A DNA stretch of 64,000 nt from positions 62,001 through 126,000 of the IMG/VR virus record IMGVR_UViG_3300027759_000046; one strand, written 5' to 3'. Both the position numbers and the translations under genes were made by a program. Below, in pieces: positions 4,478 to 63,876 of the stretch (position 1 is its first letter; each line of letters begins with the position of its first letter). A model generated the notes under the pieces. That model was not told where the DNA came from and searched no databases. It saw only the letters and a program-made list of their open reading frames with translations.

Positions 4478-5356
4478 TTATTTATCAAAGCCTTTCAGTA
4501 ATTCTTTAAGCGTAGTTAACTCTTCTTCAGATAATTTAGATAGATCAGGTTTATTTACCTTGATCTCAAATATAAAAGAGCCGTTTGTCCCAGCTGGCGT
4601 AAATAATCCATGGTCAGGAATTCTAACTCTAATATCTGATAAACTATTTACAGTTAGTGATTTTATGCGATATTTTTTACCCAGGGGATTTTCCAAGATA
4701 ATTTCGTCTGAAAATAAGACATCTCTGAGCTCAACATTAGTTGTCTGAACAATATCAAAGTCTTTAAGTTGCAGCCCCTGTAGATCTATAATTATTCTAA
4801 CTATTAGATCCCCAGATACGCTATTTTGCCTAGCCTTTCCAAAAAAGTCAGACCGTTCAAAGACCTGGCTAGAACCGGCTCCCTTAATTCTAAGAATAAC
4901 TGCATCAACTGATCCGCCAATCTTTGTGATAGGGTATGCAGTCTTACTCAAGTTAACCTTTATCTTATAAGACTTATTATCAAATGATGATTTATCAAGG
5001 CCAGATTTTGAAATTTGATATTCTACTGTGAATTCAACGCCTGCCATTAGTTCGCTTAGCGAAAACTTACGGTCCCTTACGATATTTAGATGAGACGGAT
5101 CAAATCCATTAAAAGAAAAGTCATGAAATGTTGTGAAATATTCGTTAACTGATCCGCCATTTAACGTCCGATCATAGTCGGCTCTTTTATTTGAATCTCC
5201 GAGTGTTTCGTAAGCTTCAACTATTTTCTTAAAGTGCTCTTCTCCTTCCGGGTTTCGGTCGGGGTGATACTGTTTAGTAAGTTTGCGGTACGCCTTTTTA
5301 ATTTCATCAGAATCAGCATTCTCTTGAATCTCAAGGACTTCATAATAATTTTTCAA
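4478..5356 (-). CDS. dnaJ: DnaJ/CbpA-like co-chaperone (J domain plus C-terminal domain, no Zn finger)
   Basis: [33 protein letters not shown]. Confidence 0.9.
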
Positions 5357-20557: not shown

Positions 20558-21003
20558 GCTTCGTTCATTGGAGTAATTTGGCCACCACATTCGCAAGTCA
20601 TGTCTTCATTACATTCTTGTGATTCGTAAGTCATATTACACTCATTGCAAGAGTATAAACCTTCAGCCATTTCGTCGATTTCCTCTCCGAATTTTTTAAT
20701 TGGGCCTTCTGCTTCAGCTTCCGGTGCTCCATTTAATTCATTCATAAGAAAATCAGCAACCTCTTCGATATCGTCTTTCGATGTTGCAATATGATCGGCT
20801 GCCCAATCATGGCCGTTGTGAAGTAGTTGATTAACTTGAGTCTCGTCCATTTCCAACATTATATCAATTAGTCTCTTAATTGTTTTAAGATTACCAAAGA
20901 ACATGTAATGATCAACCTCTTCAGAACCAGCTTGCGCCATTTCAGGATTAGTCATTTTAGGATCTTGTTCAAATGCTTCAAACGTTTTTACTAAATTTTT
21001 CAT
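20551..21003 (-). CDS. Putative head protein with C-terminal Cys cluster
   Basis: MKNLVKTFEAFE; CNEC..CxC. Confidence 0.55.
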   Translation of the reverse strand: MKNLVKTFEAFEQDPKMTNPEMAQAGSEEVDHYMFFGNLKTIKRLIDIMLEMDETQVNQLLHNGHDWAADHIATSKDDIEEVADFLMNELNGAPEAEAEGPIKKFGEEIDEMAEGLYSCNECNMTYESQECNEDMTCECGGQITPMNEAW

Positions 21004-22535
21004 TATTGATTATTATTTTGTTTTAGAAAATCTGAAAACTCAAGAATATGAGTTGCTTTCTTTTTCTTCTTTTTTATTGGGCTGAAATTATCGCCTGAAC
21101 CTAGAGAGGTTGGTGTAGGCGGTGTGATTGGTCCCATTGAACCAATTGAGCCGGGTACCTGTGCCGAAACTCCAGGCGCTCCAGCCTCTTCAAACGCAGC
21201 TTCTTTTTTAACATCGAGTACTGATGGTCCGGGAATGAACATGCGGCTTATTGCATCGCCTTTCATTTCGCCTTCTCGACCCTTCAGCGCTTTACCAACA
21301 ACCATAGCTGTTTTATTTAGGGTCTTAGCGTAAATATTGTGAACCAATGATCCAAAATTGGCAAATGCTTGCCCTGCCGGAGTCATTGGCTTGTTGTCTG
21401 GGCCAAGTAAAAGATCCATTAAAGAAGATAATCCTCTACGGAACTTCATGATCCTAGAATCATCCGCAATCTGCTTGCCAGTCACAGGTAGAGCAACTCG
21501 CTCATATAATTTAAGTTTCTTATTAAAATCAAAATGAATTCCCTTGGTTCTATCAAGTTGAATACTTTTGCTTCTAGCCTTTTCGCGTAATGCTATTTTA
21601 GCTTGAGTTAATAGGTCTTCCAGATACTTGATTGTTTCAGGATGACTTGCTTTACGCAATTTAGTCTGGCCCTTTAGTCCGTTAATCTTAATATCAATAT
21701 TGTTTAGTTCTGTTTCTAATTCTTTCTCTGTCTGAAAATTACCAATATTTAATTCTAAGATTCGACGCAAGATTGTTGCCTCTTCTCTGGTAAAACCTGA
21801 TGATTGGCCTGAAAGTGTTTCAAATCGCTCTTCTCCAATCTCTTCTTTAATCTTATCTTCAGTATATCGTTTAGCTCTCTCAAACTCTACTTTATCTTCC
21901 TCTGGGAAATCTTCAATTATTTCTTCAACTACCGTCCAATCACTTATAATCTCGTCAGCAATCTCTTCCTTTTCTTCAACGGTTTCAGCAGTTTGGATTT
22001 TATCTAAGTTAAGTTGATTTGCTTTACCAGCGCCAGTAATAATCACCAAATAAGAGCTCTCTAACGAGCGTTGAACATCTTCAATTTTTCTTGAAATTTC
22101 TTCAGCAACTTGTTTTACTTGAGCATCTTCTCTGGCTTTGAGTTTGTCGTACATGTCGTCGAGCACGCTAATCCTCTTTGCTATTTGTGCCTGCTGCTTA
22201 GCTAATGACTTAAGTAAATCATTGTGTGCAGTACCGCCCTTTGCAAATTCGTCCTTAATTAATCGGCTGATTCTATCAAGTCTATTTTTGCAGTATTTTA
22301 GGTAATTTTCAACATTGTGTTTGGATTTAATAATATCCTCCTCTTTCCACGCTTCGACCTTAATTGCCTGATCTATTAAGTTATCAAGAAATTCGTCCAT
22401 CTTTTTTAGCGCATCAAGCTGTTCTGTTGTGTACTCAGAAGAGTCCACATCAGGTTCACCAGAGCCGATTTGAATTAAATTGGCCTCTGCGAGTAAATCC
22501 TCTAGGTGTTTAAATCTTTTTACTTTTAGAAACAT
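21003..22535 (-). CDS. Long coiled-coil protein, putative virion component
   Basis: Helical acidic/basic heptads; LLAE near the N-terminus; C-terminal ILEFSDFL. Confidence 0.55.
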   Translation of the reverse strand: MFLKVKRFKHLEDLLAEANLIQIGSGEPDVDSSEYTTEQLDALKKMDEFLDNLIDQAIKVEAWKEEDIIKSKHNVENYLKYCKNRLDRISRLIKDEFAKGGTAHNDLLKSLAKQQAQIAKRISVLDDMYDKLKAREDAQVKQVAEEISRKIEDVQRSLESSYLVIITGAGKANQLNLDKIQTAETVEEKEEIADEIISDWTVVEEIIEDFPEEDKVEFERAKRYTEDKIKEEIGEERFETLSGQSSGFTREEATILRRILELNIGNFQTEKELETELNNIDIKINGLKGQTKLRKASHPETIKYLEDLLTQAKIALREKARSKSIQLDRTKGIHFDFNKKLKLYERVALPVTGKQIADDSRIMKFRRGLSSLMDLLLGPDNKPMTPAGQAFANFGSLVHNIYAKTLNKTAMVVGKALKGREGEMKGDAISRMFIPGPSVLDVKKEAAFEEAGAPGVSAQVPGSIGSMGPITPPTPTSLGSGDNFSPIKKKKKKATHILEFSDFLKQNNNQ

Positions 22536-23208: not shown

Positions 23209-26160
23209 TTACTTTGTAAATATGTTGAATATATTATGATTCTGTGGGTCCTGCCACATTGGTCCACTGCGGCATTCAAGATGCTTTTTAAATTCTTTAA
23301 AGCCTGCATCGACTTTACAATAGACAATCTCAGATGAGTTTACGACTGCTAGTACTGAAAACTCATCAACTTTAGCGTAATATAAAATATGATGCCATCC
23401 TAAAAAGTTTATGAATTCCTGTTCGTTTCGGCTATTCTCAAAAAAGTCTTTAATTCCAGCAAGCAAGTCATCTTCATGGCCGCAACCCGTTTCCCAAATT
23501 CCTCCAGAAAAAATAGAGGCAAACCATCTCTCAAAGTCTTCAATAACTTGAGGTTCATTTGAAAATTCCTCTGAGATAAGATCAAAAAGAGGTAACCATG
23601 TTTGGTTGAGCCATATTCTATTAATTGTGAATAACCTAGCTCTTGGATCATTTTTTAAAATATCTTCACAAAACTCAACAATCTTTAAATTTTCGCCAAC
23701 GATTAACTTAAGTTCTTCAAGCTTTTTAATTATTACTGAGCGACCGTTGACAAAACCTGCTCTTGATGATATTAATCTGCCGCTGTTCCCCTTAACCTCA
23801 ATATTAACCGGGCCTGCAGCAATATCACCTTCGCCTGCTTTCTTTTTACCATCTTTAAACAATATTGAAATTAGCTCGCCCTTTCCCTTTCCTTGAGTAT
23901 TTCCAATTTTATTAGTTATCTGAAACCTTAGAATGGTCTTAAATATTTCGGGATTAACTCCAAAGTCCTGAGCCGTTAATTCTCCAGAAGACGATATGTT
24001 TGAAATATCGTAGCCTTTACCGCCCGCTATTGTTTCGTAGAAACTTTCAAGGTCAGCGGCTGATTCATTTAGAATATCACCACACTCTTGAGCAAAAGAT
24101 TCTGCATCGGTGCTTAAATATCCACGGTTAATCAATTCTTCCGCAATTTTCCCTAATGTGTCAGAAGATTCGTGCATAGACATCTCCTTTTTAAGTTTAG
24201 CTAAGATGCTAGAATATTTATCGGGTGAAGATTTTCTTAGTTTTTTTAAACTATCAAATTCTCTTTCTGACTCGTGATCATCGTCTGTCCGTGGAACTTC
24301 ATTTGCAAAATTTGCCTCAACTGCTTCGTTTAACTTAGGCTGTGCCAATTCGTTAATATCGCGATTCATATTGAAAAATTCTGAGTGAATTGCTTGAGGT
24401 GCAGCTGATTTAAAATTTTGATAATCTTCAGATCTTAACGAGTTCATAATCGAATCTTTAACTCCAGCAATTGGTAATTCAACTAGAGAAACGTCATTTC
24501 TAAAATTAAGATTTCGTGATCTCTTTTTAGCTAATTCCATTTGTAAAGCCAAGTCCTTGATTCGACTCTTTGTTCCAGATATAATAACTGGTTCAAAATC
24601 AGGTTTGATTGCTCTCAATAAGTTCTCAACCTCTCCGTCCTGTACCATTCGGTGGCCGGTGATAAAGCTTGGGTGTTGCGAAGTAACTTTGTCTAAACAG
24701 CCTTTAACGGTTTCTTGTTTAAAAGGTTTAGTCTTATTTACTGAACCGTCATGAATGCATACCATTAAACACGGATAGCCATTCATATCAAACAATTTCT
24801 GTGCAGATTTAAGATGACCTGGGTGAAAGGGTTGAAAATCTGAGATGATTAAGTTAACTCTTTTGGATTTACGTTCGTTATCTGGAACTTCTGCAAAGGT
24901 TTCAAAATAACCAAGATCTCGCTCTTCTCCAACAAATTCGCTGAATGTTGGAAAGTAATTCTCGTAAACAGCATCACCTAATAGGACATTACTAATCTTC
25001 TCAATTTGAGAAACCAGATTAGCTCGCATTGGCTTGGTGAAGAATGTTGAACTAACTCGAACCGTTTTCTTTCTAAACATATTTAAGAAGACTCGATAAA
25101 TCTCCTTGTAGTTAGGATTCGACTCAATAATCTGAGTAACCTTTTTGTCGTGAATAAGGTCGAAATTTACGTTAAAGTCTTCTCTTCTCAGGAATTCTGG
25201 AATTTGAATATCTAAGTCAATGTATTTTTCGCCGAACTCAGAAATGAATTCTAAATAGATGTGATTGACTAGCGAAATATATTTTTGCTCGTATGAATCT
25301 CCTTTAAGTGGAATTTCTCGCAATTCGCTAAGTGAATATCTCTCAATAAAATTCATTAAGTCGATAACAATAATCCAAATATAGTCGTCCGATTTCTTTT
25401 GAACTCGGTCTTGTGCTTTTTGTTTTGCATTCGCCTGAAATACTGGATCTACTAATTTAGCCAAGAAGACTGAATCTTCTGAGTTATTGTTGGGATCGTA
25501 AAAACGAAATACCAAACCTTCAATATCTTTGTCTAGAGTATCCCTTAGGAACGTTGTTCCAAGCTCAGGATTTAGAACTGACACAATATACTTCGTGAAT
25601 GATGTTGTCTTAAATTTATCAACCAATTCTTCGAAAGGCGTGTAGATGAATTCATGCATTTTCTCTTTTTGATCTGGAGAAAGCTTGCCTTGAAATACGA
25701 TCGGTGGACGTTCAATATTTAAAATATCAGCCCATTTGTCAAGAGTATCTTTATCTTGAATAGTCTCCGACATCTCGCCCTTTTCATCAAGGATATGAAT
25801 GTAGCTTAAGATTAAGCCATTTTTAGGAAGTCTATCGTATGCAATAGTTTGTGCTTTTGGGCTAGTAAACCACTCCATTCCGAAATGGTAGTTATCTGGT
25901 ACTTTGCTTACGGTATCAGGCCCAAGGCTCTCAAAGTGTCTAATAGCCGGCTCAAAGTAACGGCTGAGTACTCTATCGATGTACGTAATCTCTGCGTTCC
26001 TCTTAAAGAAGCGGAACTTACCCGTGCTAGGGTCTTTTTGGGCGCCAAAGAAGGCCCCATCCATTTTCTCATTTACAATTACTGTTTTGTTTAAAAGGCC
26101 TTCTAAGAATTCCTTTCCGCGTTTATCATAAACGTCTCTTAAGTGTGATAGTCCTGGCAT
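23209..26160 (-). CDS. Multidomain protein: ATP-dependent (RNA) ligase-like, HxGH nucleotidyltransferase, PD-(D/E)xK nuclease-like
   Basis: NEKMDG (motif I), FGMEWF, IEGLVFR, LAKL; DFQPFHPGHLK; GEGDIAAGPVNIEVKG. Confidence 0.7.
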   Translation of the reverse strand: MPGLSHLRDVYDKRGKEFLEGLLNKTVIVNEKMDGAFFGAQKDPSTGKFRFFKRNAEITYIDRVLSRYFEPAIRHFESLGPDTVSKVPDNYHFGMEWFTSPKAQTIAYDRLPKNGLILSYIHILDEKGEMSETIQDKDTLDKWADILNIERPPIVFQGKLSPDQKEKMHEFIYTPFEELVDKFKTTSFTKYIVSVLNPELGTTFLRDTLDKDIEGLVFRFYDPNNNSEDSVFLAKLVDPVFQANAKQKAQDRVQKKSDDYIWIIVIDLMNFIERYSLSELREIPLKGDSYEQKYISLVNHIYLEFISEFGEKYIDLDIQIPEFLRREDFNVNFDLIHDKKVTQIIESNPNYKEIYRVFLNMFRKKTVRVSSTFFTKPMRANLVSQIEKISNVLLGDAVYENYFPTFSEFVGEERDLGYFETFAEVPDNERKSKRVNLIISDFQPFHPGHLKSAQKLFDMNGYPCLMVCIHDGSVNKTKPFKQETVKGCLDKVTSQHPSFITGHRMVQDGEVENLLRAIKPDFEPVIISGTKSRIKDLALQMELAKKRSRNLNFRNDVSLVELPIAGVKDSIMNSLRSEDYQNFKSAAPQAIHSEFFNMNRDINELAQPKLNEAVEANFANEVPRTDDDHESEREFDSLKKLRKSSPDKYSSILAKLKKEMSMHESSDTLGKIAEELINRGYLSTDAESFAQECGDILNESAADLESFYETIAGGKGYDISNISSSGELTAQDFGVNPEIFKTILRFQITNKIGNTQGKGKGELISILFKDGKKKAGEGDIAAGPVNIEVKGNSGRLISSRAGFVNGRSVIIKKLEELKLIVGENLKIVEFCEDILKNDPRARLFTINRIWLNQTWLPLFDLISEEFSNEPQVIEDFERWFASIFSGGIWETGCGHEDDLLAGIKDFFENSRNEQEFINFLGWHHILYYAKVDEFSVLAVVNSSEIVYCKVDAGFKEFKKHLECRSGPMWQDPQNHNIFNIFTK

Positions 26161-48638: not shown

Positions 48639-49018
48639 TTGACTTGAGAATCGCCCGCCCATACACGATAAGAATCTTGGTCAAAGTGTTCGGTTGAGAC
48701 CTCAAAAATCTCTCCATCAAATAGAGCCTCTAGTTGATGCGGCTGCCCTGGTCGTTGTCGAACAACATCACCTTCGACTAGACGCTGTTCATGCACTTCA
48801 GCAGTTTCAGTATCAATCCAACGATAAAGGAACTCCCCGAAGTTTACATACCAGGTCTCATCCTTAATTAGGTGATAGTGCATTGAGAACTTACAACCCT
48901 TTTTGAACTGTAAGATCTTGCCACAGTAATTTTCATTATTTTCAATAATAATTTCTTTACCCCAGCCTTTGGGTACTTCGCATCCTTTACAGACGCTTGG
49001 CTTGATTTGATGTCCCAT
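48635..49018 (-). CDS. Cupin, sugar isomerase-like (mannose-6-P isomerase type II/lyxose isomerase-like)
   Basis: KGWGKE, FSMHYH..KDETWYV, PHQL, EVST. Confidence 0.8.
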   Translation of the reverse strand: MGHQIKPSVCKGCEVPKGWGKEIIIENNENYCGKILQFKKGCKFSMHYHLIKDETWYVNFGEFLYRWIDTETAEVHEQRLVEGDVVRQRPGQPHQLEALFDGEIFEVSTEHFDQDSYRVWAGDSQVK

Positions 49019-50994
49019 TATTTAATAGATAATTTTTCGTCTTTCGCCTTATACGTGATCACCAGATGATCTCCTTCCTTGATCTTATTGTCAATATAGG
49101 CTTCAGCAATGAGGTCTTCTACGTGTGACTGGATCACTCTCTTTAACGGCCTAGCTCCAAACTTAGGATCATATCCTTTTTCAATCAAGAAGTCCTTTGC
49201 CTGTTTAGTAACTTCAATTGTATACCCGTTTTCTTTAACTCGAGCAGCTAGATCAGCAATATCAATCTCAATGATTTTACGAATATCGTCTTTCTCAAGT
49301 GAATTAAAAATGATAATATCGTCTATTCGATTTATGAATTCTGGCGCAAACTGTTTGCTAATTGCCTTTTGTAAAACTTGATGAGCCAGATCTTTCTGCT
49401 TTTCAATTGAGTCAGCTGTTGCAAAGCCAATGCCTGCACCAAACTCTTGTAGACCCTTAACTCCAACGTTTGAAGTCATGATGATCACAGTATTTTTAAA
49501 ATCAATCTTACGCCCTAATCCATCAGTCATGTGGCCTTCGTCCAATACTTGCAATAGGGTATTAAAAATATCCGGGTGAGCTTTTTCAATCTCATCAAGT
49601 AGAATCACAGAATAGGGTTTACGTTTTACCTTCTCAGTCAACTGACCGCCATTCTCGTATCCAACGTATCCTGGAGGAGCTCCCAACATTTTACTTGCGG
49701 TAAACTTCTCTCCGTACTCTGACATGTCTATTCTGATCAAGGCATCTTCTGATGAGAACATGAATTTTGCTAACTGCTTAGCCAATTCAGTTTTACCAAC
49801 ACCGGTGGGGCCTAGGAACATGAATGTACCGATTGGTTTCTTTTTGGACTTTAGACCTGCTCGAGAACGTTGAATTGCTCGGGTTAATTTTCGGACCGCA
49901 TCGCCTTGGCCAATAACGCTCTGAGCTAACGTAGTTTCCATGTTAGCAACTTTCTCAAGTTCAGAACCTTGTAAACGAGTAACTGGAATACCTGTGATTG
50001 ATGCAACAACTGCTGCAATATCAGCCTCATTTACTTCAAGCCTATTAACTTTCAGAGACTCTTCCCAAAGTTTCTTCTCATCGGAAATTTCGTCAATTAC
50101 TTTTAGAGCTTCGTCTCTAAGCTTAGCAGCTAATTCGTATTGCTGTGATTTAACTGCTTTATCTTTTTTCTCAGTAACTTCGCCTAATTTTTCTTCAAGT
50201 TTCTTAATTGAATCCGGTACAACTACTCCATTAATGTGGACGTTTGACCCAGCTTCATCCATTAAGTCGATTGCTTTGTCTGGTAAAAACCTGTCCTGAA
50301 TGTATCGATCACTATAGGAAACGCATGCATCTAGTGCATCATCGCTATAGTGAACAGAGTGGTGATCCTCGTATTTGGATCTGATATTTTCCATGATTTG
50401 ACGAGTTTCGGCTGAGCTAGATGGATTTACCAAGATTTGTTGAAATCTACGATTAAGTGCTCCATCTTTTTCAAATGATCCACGGTACTCATCGACTGTT
50501 GTTGCACCAATGCATTGAATCTCTCCACGGCTAAGTGCTGGCTTCAAGATATTAGCCGCATCTAATGAACCGCTCGCAGAGCCAGCTCCAATTAGTGTAT
50601 GAATTTCGTCAATGAATAGAATAATATTTGGGTTCTGTTGAACCTCTTGAATGATTTGTTCCATGCGCTCTTCAAACTGACCTCGGTATTTTGTACCAGC
50701 GACCAAGTTTGCAAGCTCAAGAGAGATAATCTTCTTATCGAACAGGACTCTTGGACAAGTTCGGTCAATAATCATTTCAGCAAGACCTTCGACTATTGCA
50801 GTTTTACCAACACCAGGTTCACCAATTAAAAGCGGATTATTTTTCTTTCTACGTGCCAAGATTTGGCTGCATCTCTTTATCTCAGCAGATCGGCCAACGA
50901 CCGGATCAAGCTTGCCTTCGAACGCTAATTGCGTTAAGTCCTTACCGAAGGAATCCAACATTGGAGTTTTACTGTTTTGCGATTGTTTTGCCAT
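49018..50994 (-). CDS. clpC: ClpC-like AAA+ ATPase lacking the N-terminal domain
   Basis: Two Walker A motifs (GEPGVGKT, GPTGVGKT), UVR-like M domain, IGF loop. Confidence 0.9.
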   Translation of the reverse strand: MAKQSQNSKTPMLDSFGKDLTQLAFEGKLDPVVGRSAEIKRCSQILARRKKNNPLLIGEPGVGKTAIVEGLAEMIIDRTCPRVLFDKKIISLELANLVAGTKYRGQFEERMEQIIQEVQQNPNIILFIDEIHTLIGAGSASGSLDAANILKPALSRGEIQCIGATTVDEYRGSFEKDGALNRRFQQILVNPSSSAETRQIMENIRSKYEDHHSVHYSDDALDACVSYSDRYIQDRFLPDKAIDLMDEAGSNVHINGVVVPDSIKKLEEKLGEVTEKKDKAVKSQQYELAAKLRDEALKVIDEISDEKKLWEESLKVNRLEVNEADIAAVVASITGIPVTRLQGSELEKVANMETTLAQSVIGQGDAVRKLTRAIQRSRAGLKSKKKPIGTFMFLGPTGVGKTELAKQLAKFMFSSEDALIRIDMSEYGEKFTASKMLGAPPGYVGYENGGQLTEKVKRKPYSVILLDEIEKAHPDIFNTLLQVLDEGHMTDGLGRKIDFKNTVIIMTSNVGVKGLQEFGAGIGFATADSIEKQKDLAHQVLQKAISKQFAPEFINRIDDIIIFNSLEKDDIRKIIEIDIADLAARVKENGYTIEVTKQAKDFLIEKGYDPKFGARPLKRVIQSHVEDLIAEAYIDNKIKEGDHLVITYKAKDEKLSIK

Positions 50995-56309: not shown

Positions 56310-56355
56310 CTCTTTGTAACCCTATTGATTACTCAAAGGCCCGCGGACCCGAGAC

Positions 56356-56380
56356 GAACAGAGCGAGGCTCTATGTTCCA
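56356..56380. repeat. Right arm of the inverted repeat, in a structured 5' leader
   Basis: GAACAGAGCGAGGCTCTATGTTCCA. Confidence 0.8.
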
Positions 56381-56412
56381 TCTTTATTATACTTGATTAT
56401 TTATTCAAGTTT

Positions 56413-56489
56413 TGGTACTCTCGGAGAGACTCGAACTCCCAACCCCTTCGTCCGTAGCGAAGTGCTCTATTCCATTGAGCTACGAGAGC
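56413..56489 (-). tRNA. tRNA-Arg(ACG), CCA encoded
   Basis: Cloverleaf; anticodon arm CTTCG-CT ACG GA-CGAAG. Confidence 0.95.
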
Positions 56490-56495
56490 ATTTAG

Positions 56496-56569
56496 TGACC
56501 CCGACAGGATTCGAACCTGTGACCTACTGCTTAGAAGGCAGTTGCTCTATTCCGCTGAGCTACGGGGCC
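56496..56569 (-). tRNA. tRNA-Arg(TCT)
   Basis: Anticodon arm ACTGC-CT TCT AA-GCAGT; no CCA. Confidence 0.95.
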
Positions 56570-56574
56570 ATTTG

Positions 56575-56655
56575 TACCTCGGGTGGGAATCGAACCCACA
56601 AGCATTTTGCACTCGATCTTAAGCCGAGCGTGTTTACCAATTTCACCACCGAGGC
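56575..56655 (-). tRNA. tRNA-Leu(TAA)
   Basis: Anticodon arm CTCGG-CT TAA GA-TCGAG; variable arm; no CCA. Confidence 0.93.
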
Positions 56656-56656
56656 G

Positions 56657-56733
56657 TGGGGTGACAGAGGGGAATCGAACCCCCGATCTTCTGAACCACA
56701 ATCAGACGCTTTAACCAACTAAGCTACCGCCAC
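56657..56733 (-). tRNA. tRNA-His(GTG), CCA encoded
   Basis: Anticodon arm TCTGA-TT GTG GT-TCAGA; C73. Confidence 0.93.
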
Positions 56734-56735
56734 AG

Positions 56736-56805
56736 AGGTCAGTGTTGGAATCGAACCAACTCCGTGGGATTTGCAGTCCCACCGGCCTCCACGACCGAAC
56801 TGACC
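56736..56805 (-). tRNA. tRNA-Cys(GCA)
   Basis: Anticodon arm TGGGA-CT GCA AA-TCCCA; U73; short D arm. Confidence 0.9.
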
Positions 56806-56809
56806 TAAT

Positions 56810-56844
56810 AAAAAATGGGGCTTAAACTTGCGCTTAAGCCCCAT
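56810..56844 (-). terminator. Intrinsic terminator upstream of the tRNA operon (putative attenuator)
   Basis: 11-bp stem ATGGGGCTTAA/TTAAGCCCCAT plus U-tract ending about 5 nt before tRNA-Cys. Confidence 0.85.
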
Positions 56845-56868
56845 GTAAGGTTTTAGTTTTCCATCACA

Positions 56869-56940
56869 TCACGGCCTAAGTCTCTCAGATCTAGATCTGC
56901 GAGTACATAAACTTAATCGATGTAATGATAGTGTTTTCAT
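56869..56940 (-). CDS. Putative leader peptide MKTLSLHRLSLCTRRSRSERLRP (23 aa)
   Basis: Translated by hand; 10 of codons 6-20 are cognate to the five downstream tRNAs; last codons can pair with the terminator 5' arm. Confidence 0.65.
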   Translation of the reverse strand: MKTLSLHRLSLCTRRSRSERLRP

Positions 56941-56974
56941 GTTAATAATATACTATAAAATTCCTTTTCGGTTT

Positions 56975-56982
56975 TATTTATA
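56975..56982 (-). promoter_or_regulatory. Late promoter TATAAATA (plus a TATATT -10-like element at 56947..56952) upstream of the leader/tRNA operon
   Basis: Exact motif; TATATT lies 6 nt before the leader ATG. Confidence 0.65.
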
Positions 56983-61792: not shown

Positions 61793-62506
61793 TCACTTCC
61801 AATAGTTTTGGTCTTTATAGAAATAGGATTCGTTGTTGCGGTTTAGCCAGTTTCTAAAGACTAGCTGTACCATTTTAGAATAACCATATCTCTTGAATCG
61901 ACGATTGTCTTGTGTAATTAATTCAGGAACTAATTTGAAGTTCGCAGGCTTAATCTTTCTGCTCAGTAACCAATCTTCGCTTTGATGAGCCCTTTCGTCG
62001 AATCCGCCAAGCTCGTTAAATATAGCTCTTCGCATTAGCATAAATCCGCCAATTGCGAATGGTCTGGTCTTGGACAGGTACCATGTAACAATTTCATTTA
62101 GTAAAAATATTAGCACAGCGCGAATGTCTAGCTCACCTTTATACTTTGGATAAGTACCAAGCATTGCGTAATTGCCAGTATACAAAGAGGCAATTGACTC
62201 TCTAATAACATCTCGGTGAGTGAATGTGACATCTGCATCCAAGAATAATAAGTATGGAGTATCTGCTAACTTCGCACCAGCATTTCGACCGACAGCTGGC
62301 AAGCCACCTTTAATTACTTCAACGTTAAGGTCCAGCTGTTCTGATAACTCTTTAATTATGTTGAGAGTTGAATCAGTAGATCCAGCGTCTGCGATAATTA
62401 CTCTAACTCCGTCTATTCCATTTTGTCGTTTAATATGTCTAAGAGTTCGGCCAATATAGGCTTCCTCATTGAGGCATGGAATTACAATAGTTAAAGATTC
62501 TTTCAT
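61793..62506 (-). CDS. GT2 family glycosyltransferase
   Basis: IVIPCLNEE, DAGSTD, GRNAGA, FLDAD, GGFDE..SED. Confidence 0.9.
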   Translation of the reverse strand: MKESLTIVIPCLNEEAYIGRTLRHIKRQNGIDGVRVIIADAGSTDSTLNIIKELSEQLDLNVEVIKGGLPAVGRNAGAKLADTPYLLFLDADVTFTHRDVIRESIASLYTGNYAMLGTYPKYKGELDIRAVLIFLLNEIVTWYLSKTRPFAIGGFMLMRRAIFNELGGFDERAHQSEDWLLSRKIKPANFKLVPELITQDNRRFKRYGYSKMVQLVFRNWLNRNNESYFYKDQNYWK

Positions 62507-63702: not shown

Positions 63703-63719
63703 TTGATCTAATTAAAAAT

Positions 63720-63794
63720 TGAAGAGGGAGGAATCCAACCCACAGTCACGGCCGTTAAGGCTTGCTCTCATTAATGTCACTGAGCTACTCTTCC
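63720..63794 (-). pseudogene. Degenerate tRNA-like element
   Basis: GGAAGAG-TA-GCTC D arm and acceptor match; T loop TTGGATT; disrupted anticodon arm. Confidence 0.55.
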
Positions 63795-63798
63795 TTTG

Positions 63799-63876
63799 TA
63801 CCCTCTGAGAGACTCGAACTCTCACCCTAAGACTAGATCCTAAGTCTAGCGCGTCTACCAATTCCGCCAAGAGGGC
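63799..63876 (-). tRNA. tRNA-Leu(TAG)
   Basis: Anticodon arm CTAGA-CT TAG GA-TCTAG; canonical T arm. Confidence 0.93.

Follow-up and report, generated by a model that had tools for sequence, protein, structure and literature searches.

Organization of the locus

The window, that is, the whole 64,000-nt stretch of DNA analysed (positions 62,001 to 126,000 of virus record IMGVR_UViG_3300027759_000046), is part of a 253-kb phage and carries on its minus strand five close-packed tRNA genes, 1-5 nt apart, preceded by a 23-codon ORF and a strong intrinsic terminator (Table 1). The identity of the tRNA genes was confirmed by an Rfam search. The terminator stem has 11 Watson-Crick pairs, or 13 pairs when one G-U and the C-G closing a GCAA loop are counted, it is followed by TTTTTT, and the hairpin alone folds at -21 kcal/mol. 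Only 9 nt separate the stem from tRNA-Cys. An earlier note, based on the sequence alone, had described the ORF, the terminator and the tRNA order, and had proposed that the leader end can pair with the terminator 5' arm; this description is correct in every detail. The pairing CUUAGGCC:GGCUUAAG and its AUGU/ACAU extension are what RNAfold predicts for the nascent RNA lacking the terminator 3' arm. The note did not, however, recognize a large 1:2 hairpin, in which codons 5-11 pair with codons 21-23, the stop codon and the 7 nt after it. The leader as a whole folds with z = -6.7.

Table 1. Coordinates of the features of the leader and tRNA operon in the window
Feature	Position	Strand	Description
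Conserved upstream motif ATAAATAAAACC	56970..56981	-	20-24 nt before the -10 element
Promoter-like motif AGTATATT	56947..56954	-	-10 hexamer TATATT (56952..56947) ends exactly 6 nt before the ATG
Leader ORF	56869..56940	-	23 codons plus TGA; encodes MKTLSLHRLSLCTRRSRSERLRP
Modelled regulatory window	56893..56928	-	Codons 5-16
Region 1	56908..56927	-	5' strand of the 1:2 hairpin (codons 5-11)
Apical hairpin inside the ORF	56882..56903	-	AGAUCU:AGAUCU
Region 2	56862..56881	-	Codons 20-23, the stop codon and 7 nt more; core CUUAGGCC (56880..56873)
Terminator stem	56844..56815	-	
Region 3	56832..56844	-	Terminator 5' arm
Region 4 and U-tract	56809..56827	-	Terminator 3' arm (56827..56815) and U-tract (56814..56809)
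tRNA operon	56413..56805	-	Five tRNA genes
tRNA-Cys(GCA)	56805-56735	-	
tRNA-His(GUG)	56733-56657	-	
tRNA-Leu(UAA)	56655-56574	-	
tRNA-Arg(UCU)	56569-56495	-	
tRNA-Arg(ACG)	56489-56413	-	

The position of the promoter-like motif predicts a leaderless or nearly leaderless leader mRNA. In the window, 6 of 11 AGTATAWT sites are intergenic and co-oriented upstream of genes, and three of these lie 26-29 nt before an ATG. The same motif directly precedes other tRNAs in relatives. The conserved upstream motif, for which a role as an upstream promoter element is inferred, overlaps the stop codon of the upstream gene in some relatives. In contrast, no promoter fits between the hairpin and tRNA-Cys, a distance that is similarly short in the relatives, and a simple sigma-70 scan found no minus-strand promoter between the hairpin and the tRNAs or inside the leader. 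Only 2 of 65 genes of this phage have a Shine-Dalgarno core, so the absence of one here says nothing against translation of the ORF.

Conservation in related phages

To find out whether this arrangement is conserved, we scanned viral contigs with the terminator pattern, which ignores the ORF. This gave 13 hits, all of which belong to this family and 12 of which carry the ORF. Together with a metagenome scan and gene-context look-ups, 13 distinct leader sequences were recovered from three clades of uncultured jumbo phages (relatives are designated here by L numbers), although the sequences are related by descent and there are effectively 2-3 independent lineages. Six gene-context look-ups gave no further cassette: five showed relatives of the upstream protein's C-terminal domain without an adjacent tRNA operon, one of them without any DNA returned, and the sixth, L151, repeated the leader of relative L125. 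A DNA search of a cultured-phage database found only generic tRNA similarity, and thus no cultured relative. In bacterial genomes the terminator pattern hit one unrelated Colwellia terminator, so there is no sign of a host-derived homologue.

The spacing of -10 hexamer, 6 nt and ATG is identical in all 13 variants, and the conserved upstream motif is present in all variants even though the upstream gene differs. All variants keep an ORF of 22-23 codons with its stop codon inside region 2. The ORF is kept open with no indel in all 11 MKTLSLH/MKNLTLH-type variants, and a 22-codon counterpart exists in the divergent clade comprising L087 and L146, at 54-57% nucleotide identity. The leader is 88-100% identical to relatives whose flanking gene DNA is 53-76% identical, which is similar to the tRNAs themselves. 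In particular, the stretch comprising region 4 and the U-tract is 100% identical in relatives L004 and L139, where the flanking 400-aa gene is only 68-76% identical at the DNA level.

The cassette is specific to the Cys-first operon. Other tRNAs of the window (Leu-UAG at 63798..63876) and of relatives L012-L016, L037 and L125 have no ORF-plus-terminator cassette, while other tRNAs in related phages have the -10 motif but no ORF or terminator. In L004, L139, L066, L125 and L151, a promoter-like AGTATAWT or GGTATATT motif precedes tRNA-Arg(UCU), so that the distal tRNAs there may escape control by the leader.

Alternative RNA structures and ribosome masking

The leader can form three mutually exclusive helices (1:2, 2:3 antiterminator and 3:4 terminator), each with compensatory base changes. 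RNAfold gives 1:2 plus 3:4 for the full RNA in all 8 variants folded, and 2:3 for the nascent RNA in 7 of the 8. RNAalifold finds 40 pairs, 7 of them compensatory. In the terminator, 98% of cells are paired and 3 pairs are compensatory. In the 1:2 hairpin, pair 15-78 occurs as A-U, C-G and U-A. For the 2:3 helix, 97% of cells are paired and two pairs changed on both sides (C-G to U-A and U-A to C-G), whereas slid controls reach at most 56% and 0 of 2000 shuffles reach the observed value. The change CU to UC in region 2 has no pairing partner to satisfy other than AG to GA in region 3. L087 provides a third state, CUUGAGCU:GGCUCAAG. The stop codon lies 1 nt after the antiterminator core in both deep clades. 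A hairpin at the position of the apical hairpin, which may act as a pause hairpin, is found in every clade, but with a different sequence and register (CAAGAC:GUCUUG, GAGAU:GUCUC).

We next masked the RNA with a modelled ribosome. The probability that the terminator arm is paired with anything upstream proved uninformative as a measure, because weak alternative pairings fill in, and it was replaced with the energy gain from the antiterminator. In the window, this gain is -8.6 to -13.0 kcal/mol with the A site at codons 5-15 (-7.5 at codon 16), against -4.0 to -5.7 at codons 18-24 and -4.8 with no ribosome. In all 8 variants the gain is at its largest with the A site inside codons 5-16, peaking at -11 to -17 kcal/mol and already declining by codons 13-16 in some variants, and it falls to -0.5 to -6.3 kcal/mol at codons 17 to stop. 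Without a ribosome it is -1.2 to -5.2 kcal/mol in seven variants and -9.5 in L037. In this model, therefore, a ribosome stalled at about codons 5-16 leaves region 2 free.

Leader codons and operon tRNA content

As stated in the earlier note, ten of the 15 codons at positions 6-20 are read by the five operon tRNAs and all five tRNAs are represented. Over the whole leader, 11 of 22 internal codons are cognate, against 10.5% expected from this phage's codon usage (binomial p = 4e-6). The leader ranks first of 280 small ATG-ORFs in the window, although two others reach 0.46-0.47. In the eight variants tested, 9-17 of 21-22 codons are cognate, against 8.5-22% expected (p from 1e-4 to 5e-8). Dinucleotide shuffles that stay open give P = 0.001 for the window and L066, and no shuffle of 5000 reaches the observed count for L125 and L087; every operon tRNA is represented in these four variants. 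Part of the codon enrichment comes from base composition and hairpin symmetry, since frame +1 also scores 3-9 of 21-22, but frame 0 has more cognate codons than both other frames in all variants.

Within the modelled regulatory window, 11-12 of the 12 codons are cognate in phages with the full eight-tRNA operon, against 8 of 12 here. Codon content follows operon content between the deep clades: L087 and L146 have tRNA(CAU, Met) and no Arg tRNA, and their leaders have 3 internal ATG and no cognate Arg codon, whereas all other leaders have 0 ATG and 2-6 cognate Arg codons (AGR plus CGH). However, the tracking is not fine-grained. The window's clade has lost tRNA-Ser(UGA), tRNA-Ser(GCU) and tRNA-Leu(UAG) from the operon, yet its leader keeps four Ser codons (4-6 across the clade). 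L142, a relative with only Cys, His and Arg(UCU) tRNAs, keeps four TTA codons, and only 3 of its 12 codons in the regulatory window are cognate. Similarly, L132 lacks tRNA-Leu(CAA) but has the same leader as L087.

Discussion

The computational tests suggested in the earlier note, where they could be run, came out in favour of its core reading, namely a trp/his-type leader-peptide attenuator in front of the tRNA operon, with leader codons matched to the operon's anticodons. In the absence of transcript, ribosome or reporter data, and with the host unknown and uncultured, we consider this reading probable (roughly 0.72), with translation of the ORF, its coupling to transcription and regulated read-through being inferred. 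We propose that transcription starts at or within a few nucleotides of the AUG, as inferred from the fixed spacing of -10 and ATG, and that a ribosome loads on the leader while RNA polymerase transcribes the next ~130 nt. If the charged tRNAs that the leader needs are plentiful, the ribosome would run to the UGA and cover region 2, so that region 3 pairs with region 4 and the GC-rich hairpin and U-tract stop transcription 9 nt before tRNA-Cys. If no ribosome translates, region 1 would hold region 2, with the same result. If the ribosome stalls at about codons 5-16 because a cognate tRNA is scarce, region 1 is covered and the free region 2 would capture the terminator's 5' arm as it emerges, allowing polymerase to read through and the five tRNAs to be made and cut out of the transcript. 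With one to a few codons for each operon tRNA, the leader would act as an OR-gate over several isoacceptors, and the product of the operon would relieve the stall, giving negative feedback on tRNA supply.

This control logic is known for amino-acid genes, but we found no description of it for tRNA genes of phages or bacteria in the literature searched. The leader-peptide attenuators of enterobacterial amino-acid operons (trpL, hisL, leuL, thrL, ilvL of ilvGMEDA, and pheL) appear to share with this element a short ORF between the promoter and the first structural gene, regulatory codons, alternative 1:2, 2:3 and 3:4 helices, an intrinsic terminator, and a stop codon placed so that a terminating ribosome masks region 2; the present leader is multivalent, as thrL and ilvL appear to be (for the theory of codon number and position, see PMC1183508). 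It differs from them in that it is encoded by a phage, that the regulated genes are tRNAs and not biosynthetic enzymes, so that the output directly replaces the sensed molecule, that the regulatory codons are single and scattered over 5-9 isoacceptors instead of forming tandem runs, and that there is no Shine-Dalgarno sequence and probably no 5' UTR. Scattered single codons predict low sensitivity except to severe depletion. The pheST (pheM leader) attenuator of E. coli likewise appears to control a component of the translation apparatus in response to charged-tRNA supply, but it controls an aminoacyl-tRNA synthetase, for one amino acid, and is chromosomal. The E. coli tRNA-Phe genes pheU and pheV provide no precedent, as in MG1655 both tRNAs start about 8 nt after a -10 element, with no leader.

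T-box riboswitches also make a terminator/antiterminator decision that reports on tRNA status, but they bind uncharged tRNA directly through a specifier codon and the T-box bulge, with no ribosome involved, and are about 200-300 nt long. Here the antiterminator loop has no conserved UGGN, and at E <= 1 Rfam gave no leader, T-box or sRNA family. Besides the tRNAs, the only matches were sub-threshold Y-RNA-like (YrlA) hits that overlap the tRNA genes and a terminator-only match to BjrC68, at 27 bits against a threshold of 39. In mycobacteria, leaderless polycysteine short ORFs act as cysteine-responsive attenuators (bioRxiv 10.1101/834739). There too the regulatory ORF starts at the 5' end of the transcript and its translation tunes expression of the downstream operon; those ORFs have runs of Cys codons and control cysteine-metabolism genes in a bacterium, whereas here the leaderless start is only inferred from promoter geometry.

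Why phages carry tRNA genes has been debated for about 50 years, the main candidates being codon compensation, replacement of tRNAs lost to host shut-off, and escape from tRNA-cleaving defences (PMC10264068, PMC11464382, PMC11555353), and almost nothing is known about how phage tRNA expression is controlled. A leader peptide whose codons mirror the operon's anticodons would show that, in these jumbo phages, tRNA production is demand-driven and set by ribosome stalling on exactly those codons, which supports the view that the tRNAs serve to fill a shortage. It would also extend classical attenuation from metabolite supply to the tRNA pool itself, and provide a compact natural sensor that reports shortage of several tRNAs at once. 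The earlier note had further suggested that the element senses tRNA depletion, for example by host anticodon nucleases. It is conceivable, though we regard it as unlikely, that a 70S ribosome loading on the very 5' AUG reads one or a few codons for each of up to nine isoacceptors and that, because single codons respond only to severe shortage, the natural trigger is tRNA destruction by host anticodon nucleases, other tRNA-cleaving defences or host shut-off by the phage itself. The cassette would then be an inducible counter-defence circuit, and these the first tRNA genes known to be under ribosome-mediated attenuation. Simple supply-and-demand feedback explains the design equally well.

Among the alternatives, the one that survives best, although it is improbable, is a structured non-coding RNA switch in which the three helices are operated not by a ribosome but by a phage or host protein, a small RNA, a tRNA binding directly, or polymerase speed, with the ORF as a by-product of the sequence. 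Consistent with this, conservation is at the nucleotide level, the helices covary, the peptide sequence is poorly conserved between clades, leader codons do not follow recent tRNA losses, and about 20% of dinucleotide shuffles stay open by chance. However, the ORF, its ATGAAA start, its length and the place of its stop relative to region 2 persist in the divergent clade, and no indel occurs in the 72-nt ORF, whereas indels begin 11 nt after the stop. The frame 0 excess of cognate codons, the shift of Met and Arg codons between clades in the direction that operon content predicts, and the lack of a matching Rfam family also weigh against it.

We find it still less likely that the locus is an independent small-protein gene whose 23-aa basic peptide is the product, the tRNAs being made by leaky read-through. 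It is a complete promoter-ORF-terminator unit, and the N-terminal MKTLSLH is conserved within the main clade. Yet substitutions are radical for a peptide (R/S/C/L/H interchange at positions 8-18), while in the full-operon clade they stay within the set of operon-cognate amino acids; moreover, the conserved helix between the ORF's end and the terminator arm is not explained, and the tRNAs would have no promoter of their own. Finally, although in most relatives the cassette begins at the stop codon of the upstream gene, and in relative L103 the same terminator directly follows a protein gene with no leader, the possibility that the hairpin is simply the terminator of the upstream transcription unit, with constitutive partial read-through and a coincidental ORF and pairings, is very unlikely, since tRNA-Cys is decayed in L103, making it a dead locus and not a working alternative, the covariation of 2:3 and 1:2 is left unexplained, and in the window, where two extra genes have been inserted upstream, the promoter-like block moved with the leader and not with the upstream gene.

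Organization of the leader and the tRNA operon

The window belongs to the 253-kb IMG/VR contig IMGVR_UViG_3300027759_000046. Its portal is of the T4 type and is closest, at 33-39% identity, to uncultured huge phages and to the Lak phages of Prevotella. Only 2 of its 65 long ORFs have a Shine-Dalgarno (SD) core and upstream regions are A/T-rich, while the genetic code is standard (53 TAA, 8 TGA and 4 TAG stops). The SD-poor, A/T-rich upstream regions and the portal affiliation suggest a Bacteroidota-like, SD-independent host.

On the minus strand, a conserved motif ATAAATAAAACC is followed by AGTATATT, six bases and then an ATG that opens a 23-codon ORF (MKTLSLHRLSLCTRRSRSERLRP). After a 25-nt spacer comes a 13-pair hairpin closed by a GCAA loop and followed by TTTTTT. 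Five tRNA genes, Cys-GCA, His-GUG, Leu-UAA, Arg-UCU and Arg-ACG, begin 9 nt after the stem and are set 1-5 nt apart. The earlier note had observed this ORF and terminator ahead of the five tRNA genes, and every statement in its observation was confirmed. Coordinates of the features discussed in this and the following sections are collected in the table.

Coordinates of the leader ORF and of other features in the window and in the compared sequences (L-numbers)
Feature	Sequence and coordinates	Strand
Leader ORF, 23 codons	window 56940..56869	minus
Promoter-like motif and GC-rich 5' UTR after the tRNA operon	window 56310..56393; L003:3905-4021; L008:2885-2985	minus (window)
Probable true start (ATG) of the zinc-ribbon protein gene	window 56285	
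Insert of ~23 nt with a promoter-like motif before tRNA-Arg(UCU)	L004:~4510-4532; L139:4614-4636; L066, L125 and L151 between tRNA-Ser(GCU) and tRNA-Arg(UCU)	
tRNA-Ser(UGA) and tRNA-Ser(GCU) genes missed by ARAGORN	L036:5585-5667 and the gaps between tRNAs in L036, L037, L125, L143, L087	
Small protein genes or ~0.3-0.8-kb inserts in the tRNA operon	L089, between tRNA-His and tRNA-Leu(UAG); L036 and L143, between tRNA-Arg(UCU) and tRNA-Arg(ACG); L146:3995-4195	
Decayed copy of the locus	L103:8380-8460	minus
tRNA-Leu(UAG)	window 63798..63876	
Weak tRNA-like remnant	window 63719..63794	minus
983-aa protein with an N-terminal RNA-ligase domain; T4 Rnl1-type ligase next to an AAA_33 kinase-like gene in L148	window 23209..26160; L148:4622-5728	minus (window)
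Weak HepT-like match	window 21003..22535	
Two-ring ClpA/ClpB-type AAA+ ATPase	window 49018..50994	minus

The leader is conserved in three clades of related phages

No cultured phage resembles the region. We searched for relatives by five routes, using the flanking proteins, a promoter-plus-ATG pattern, a terminator pattern that ignores the ORF, the same kind of terminator pattern on metagenomes, and the gene context of homologues of the upstream protein. The terminator pattern that ignores the ORF gave 13 hits, all in this family and 12 with the ORF. Together, the five routes gave 13 distinct leader sequences, which fall into three clades: that of the window (WIN, with relatives L004, L139 and L142), a clade with an eight- or nine-tRNA operon (L036, L143, L037, L089, L150, L066 and L125) and a divergent clade (L087 and L146). 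The pattern is absent from 185,579 bacterial and archaeal genomes except for one unrelated terminator.

The leader is under strong nucleotide-level selection. It is 88-100% identical, about the same as the tRNAs themselves, to relatives whose neighbouring gene DNA is 53-76% identical. In the window two extra genes, one of them GT-D-like, sit upstream, and the conserved block moved with the leader and not with the upstream gene. In one further sequence, L103, the family's terminator follows a protein gene directly and is followed by a tRNA-Cys-like sequence whose acceptor stem no longer pairs. There is no promoter motif and no leader ORF at this locus, which reads as joint decay of the leader and the tRNA. 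In some relatives small protein genes or inserts interrupt the tRNA operon, so that in those phages it is not a simple contiguous tRNA array.

Alternative structures of the leader RNA

The full leader is predicted to fold into a long hairpin plus the terminator, at -45.8 kcal/mol and z = -6.7. In the long hairpin, codons 5-11 pair with codons 21-23, the stop codon and the 7 nt that follow. When the terminator's 3' arm is left off, the RNA refolds, codons 21-23 (CUUAGGCC) now pair with the terminator's 5' arm, and the helix is extended as suggested in the earlier note. The same behaviour is predicted for 7 of the 8 variants folded.

We then counted pairs on the seven alignable sequences. The lower stem of the long hairpin (helix 1:2) is 98% paired, and one of its pairs occurs as A-U, C-G and U-A. 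The antiterminator (helix 2:3) is 97% paired and two of its pairs changed on both sides, whereas slid controls reached at most 56% and 0 of 2000 shuffles reached the observed value. The terminator (helix 3:4) is 98% paired, with three compensatory pairs. RNAalifold independently gave 40 pairs, 7 of them compensatory. The change CU to UC in region 2 answers AG to GA in the terminator arm, and no other helix requires it. The L087 clade has a third state, CUUGAGCU with GGCUCAAG, and there the terminator 3' arm has changed as well. The small hairpin inside the ORF is present in every clade, but with a different sequence and register. In both deep clades the stop codon begins 1 nt after the antiterminator core.

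To model the effect of a ribosome, we forced the stretch from -15 to +12 nt around the A-site codon to be unpaired and measured how much ensemble energy the nascent RNA gains by pairing the terminator arm with upstream sequence. Across all eight variants the gain is largest with the A site inside codons 5-16, peaking at -11 to -17 kcal/mol and already falling by codons 13-16 in some variants. In the window it is -8.6 to -13.0 kcal/mol at codons 5-15 and -7.5 at codon 16. From codon 17 to the stop the gain is -0.5 to -6.3 kcal/mol, and with no ribosome it is -1.2 to -5.2 kcal/mol in seven variants and -9.5 in L037, a member of the eight- or nine-tRNA clade. This is the on/off pattern of a trp-type attenuator, and it defines codons 5-16 as the regulatory window.

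Leader codons and the operon tRNAs

With standard wobble rules, 11 of 22 internal codons in the window's leader are read by the five operon tRNAs, and all five are represented. The fraction expected from this phage's own genes is 10.5% (p = 4e-6). Against dinucleotide shuffles that remain open, P = 0.001, and the ORF ranks first, but only narrowly, of 280 small ATG-ORFs in the window. Frame +1 also shows some enrichment, so base composition and hairpin symmetry contribute to the signal.

In several relatives ARAGORN had missed tRNA-Ser(UGA) and tRNA-Ser(GCU) genes with unusual D and T arms, one of which scores only with Rfam's tRNA-Sec model (47.9 bits) although its anticodon is UGA (Ser). With these added, the full operon is Cys, Ser, His, Leu, Leu, Ser, Arg, Arg. 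In that clade codons 4-18 are all Leu, Ser, His, Cys or Arg in most variants, and 11-12 of the 12 regulatory-window codons are cognate. Those five amino acids make up 22% of the phage's codons. The divergent clade has tRNAs Cys, Met(CAU), His, Ser and Leu (two anticodons), plus Ser(GCU) in L087, and no Arg, although the sequence alone did not distinguish whether the CAU tRNA is elongator Met or Ile2. Its leaders, MKMLLCHISMSLSHSMSGRLEL and MKMSLCHISMSLSHSMSEGLEL, have three internal ATG codons and no cognate Arg codon, whereas all other leaders have none of the former and 2-6 of the latter (AGR plus CGH).

Within the window's own clade, however, the operon has shrunk to five tRNAs (WIN), four (L004, L139) and three (L142), and the leader has not followed. 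The window keeps four Ser codons and one Thr codon in its leader, and three of the Ser codons and the Thr codon fall in the regulatory window (8/12 cognate). L142 keeps four TTA codons without a tRNA-Leu(UAA) and scores only 3/12. CGH codons do fall from 2 to 1 to 0 as tRNA-Arg(ACG) is lost, but that is a small effect. In addition, a further relative, L132, lacks tRNA-Leu(CAA) and has the same leader as L087. The match is therefore clear between deep clades and essentially complete in the full-operon clade, but it is not maintained over short evolutionary times.

Promoter-like motifs and the start of translation

In all 13 variants a TATAWT hexamer ends exactly six bases before the ATG. The longer motif AGTATAWT occurs 11 times in the window. 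Six of these sites are intergenic and co-oriented upstream of genes, lying 26-29 nt before the ATG of three protein genes, 6 nt before the leader's ATG, and further upstream of two others. In relatives the motif sits just upstream of other tRNAs that have no leader. If this is the promoter, transcription starts at or next to the A of the AUG and the leader mRNA is leaderless, for which there is a precedent in the leaderless regulatory short ORFs of mycobacteria (bioRxiv 10.1101/834739). This step is an inference, and a more distant start is possible, which would give an AT-rich, SD-free 5' UTR like those of the phage's other genes.

In most relatives, but not in the window, an insert carrying an AGTATAWT or GGTATATT promoter-like motif lies just before tRNA-Arg(UCU). 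It may be an internal promoter that bypasses the attenuator, in which case the distal tRNAs of L004, L139, L066, L125 and L151 (a further relative) may have a second, unregulated source.

Directly after the tRNA operon of the window, an AGTATAAT promoter-like motif is followed by a GC-rich 5' UTR with two hairpins (AGAGC..GCUCU and GGGUCC..GGGCCU), which precedes a ~257-aa zinc-ribbon protein gene. Apart from one single-base indel this UTR is identical in L003, L139 and L142, although the protein is only 78% identical to that of L003. In L008 (58% protein identity) both hairpins covary. The true start of the gene is probably the ATG listed in the table, because relatives have a stop after the upstream ATG.

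Comparison with known attenuators

The anatomy satisfies every sequence-level criterion of the leader-peptide attenuators of amino-acid operons. It differs from them in what is regulated (tRNAs), in using scattered single codons for many isoacceptors, in being phage-borne and probably in being leaderless. It is not a T-box. The E. coli genes pheU/pheV, considered as a possible precedent, have no leader. In the literature searched we found no report of tRNA genes under ribosome-mediated attenuation, and a paper on the function of phage tRNAs does not mention promoters, operons or terminators at all. We conclude that this is most likely (probability of about 0.72) a genuine ribosome-mediated attenuator that gives demand-driven feedback control of a phage tRNA operon. 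That it senses tRNA-cleaving host defences is an attractive but untested possibility, which we regard as doubtful.

Other features of the window

The window's tRNA-Leu(UAG) has no leader or terminator upstream, and a weak tRNA-like remnant (17 bits, below threshold) lies immediately downstream of it. The 983-aa protein with an N-terminal RNA-ligase domain also has a weak cytidylyltransferase-like match. Together with the T4 Rnl1-type ligase and the neighbouring AAA_33 kinase-like gene carried by a relative (L148), and with a weak HepT-like match in the window, this hints at a tRNA/RNA repair theme in these phages. The window also encodes a two-ring ClpA/ClpB-type AAA+ ATPase with AAA_2, AAA_lid_9 and ClpB_D2-small domains (PHROG 4871).
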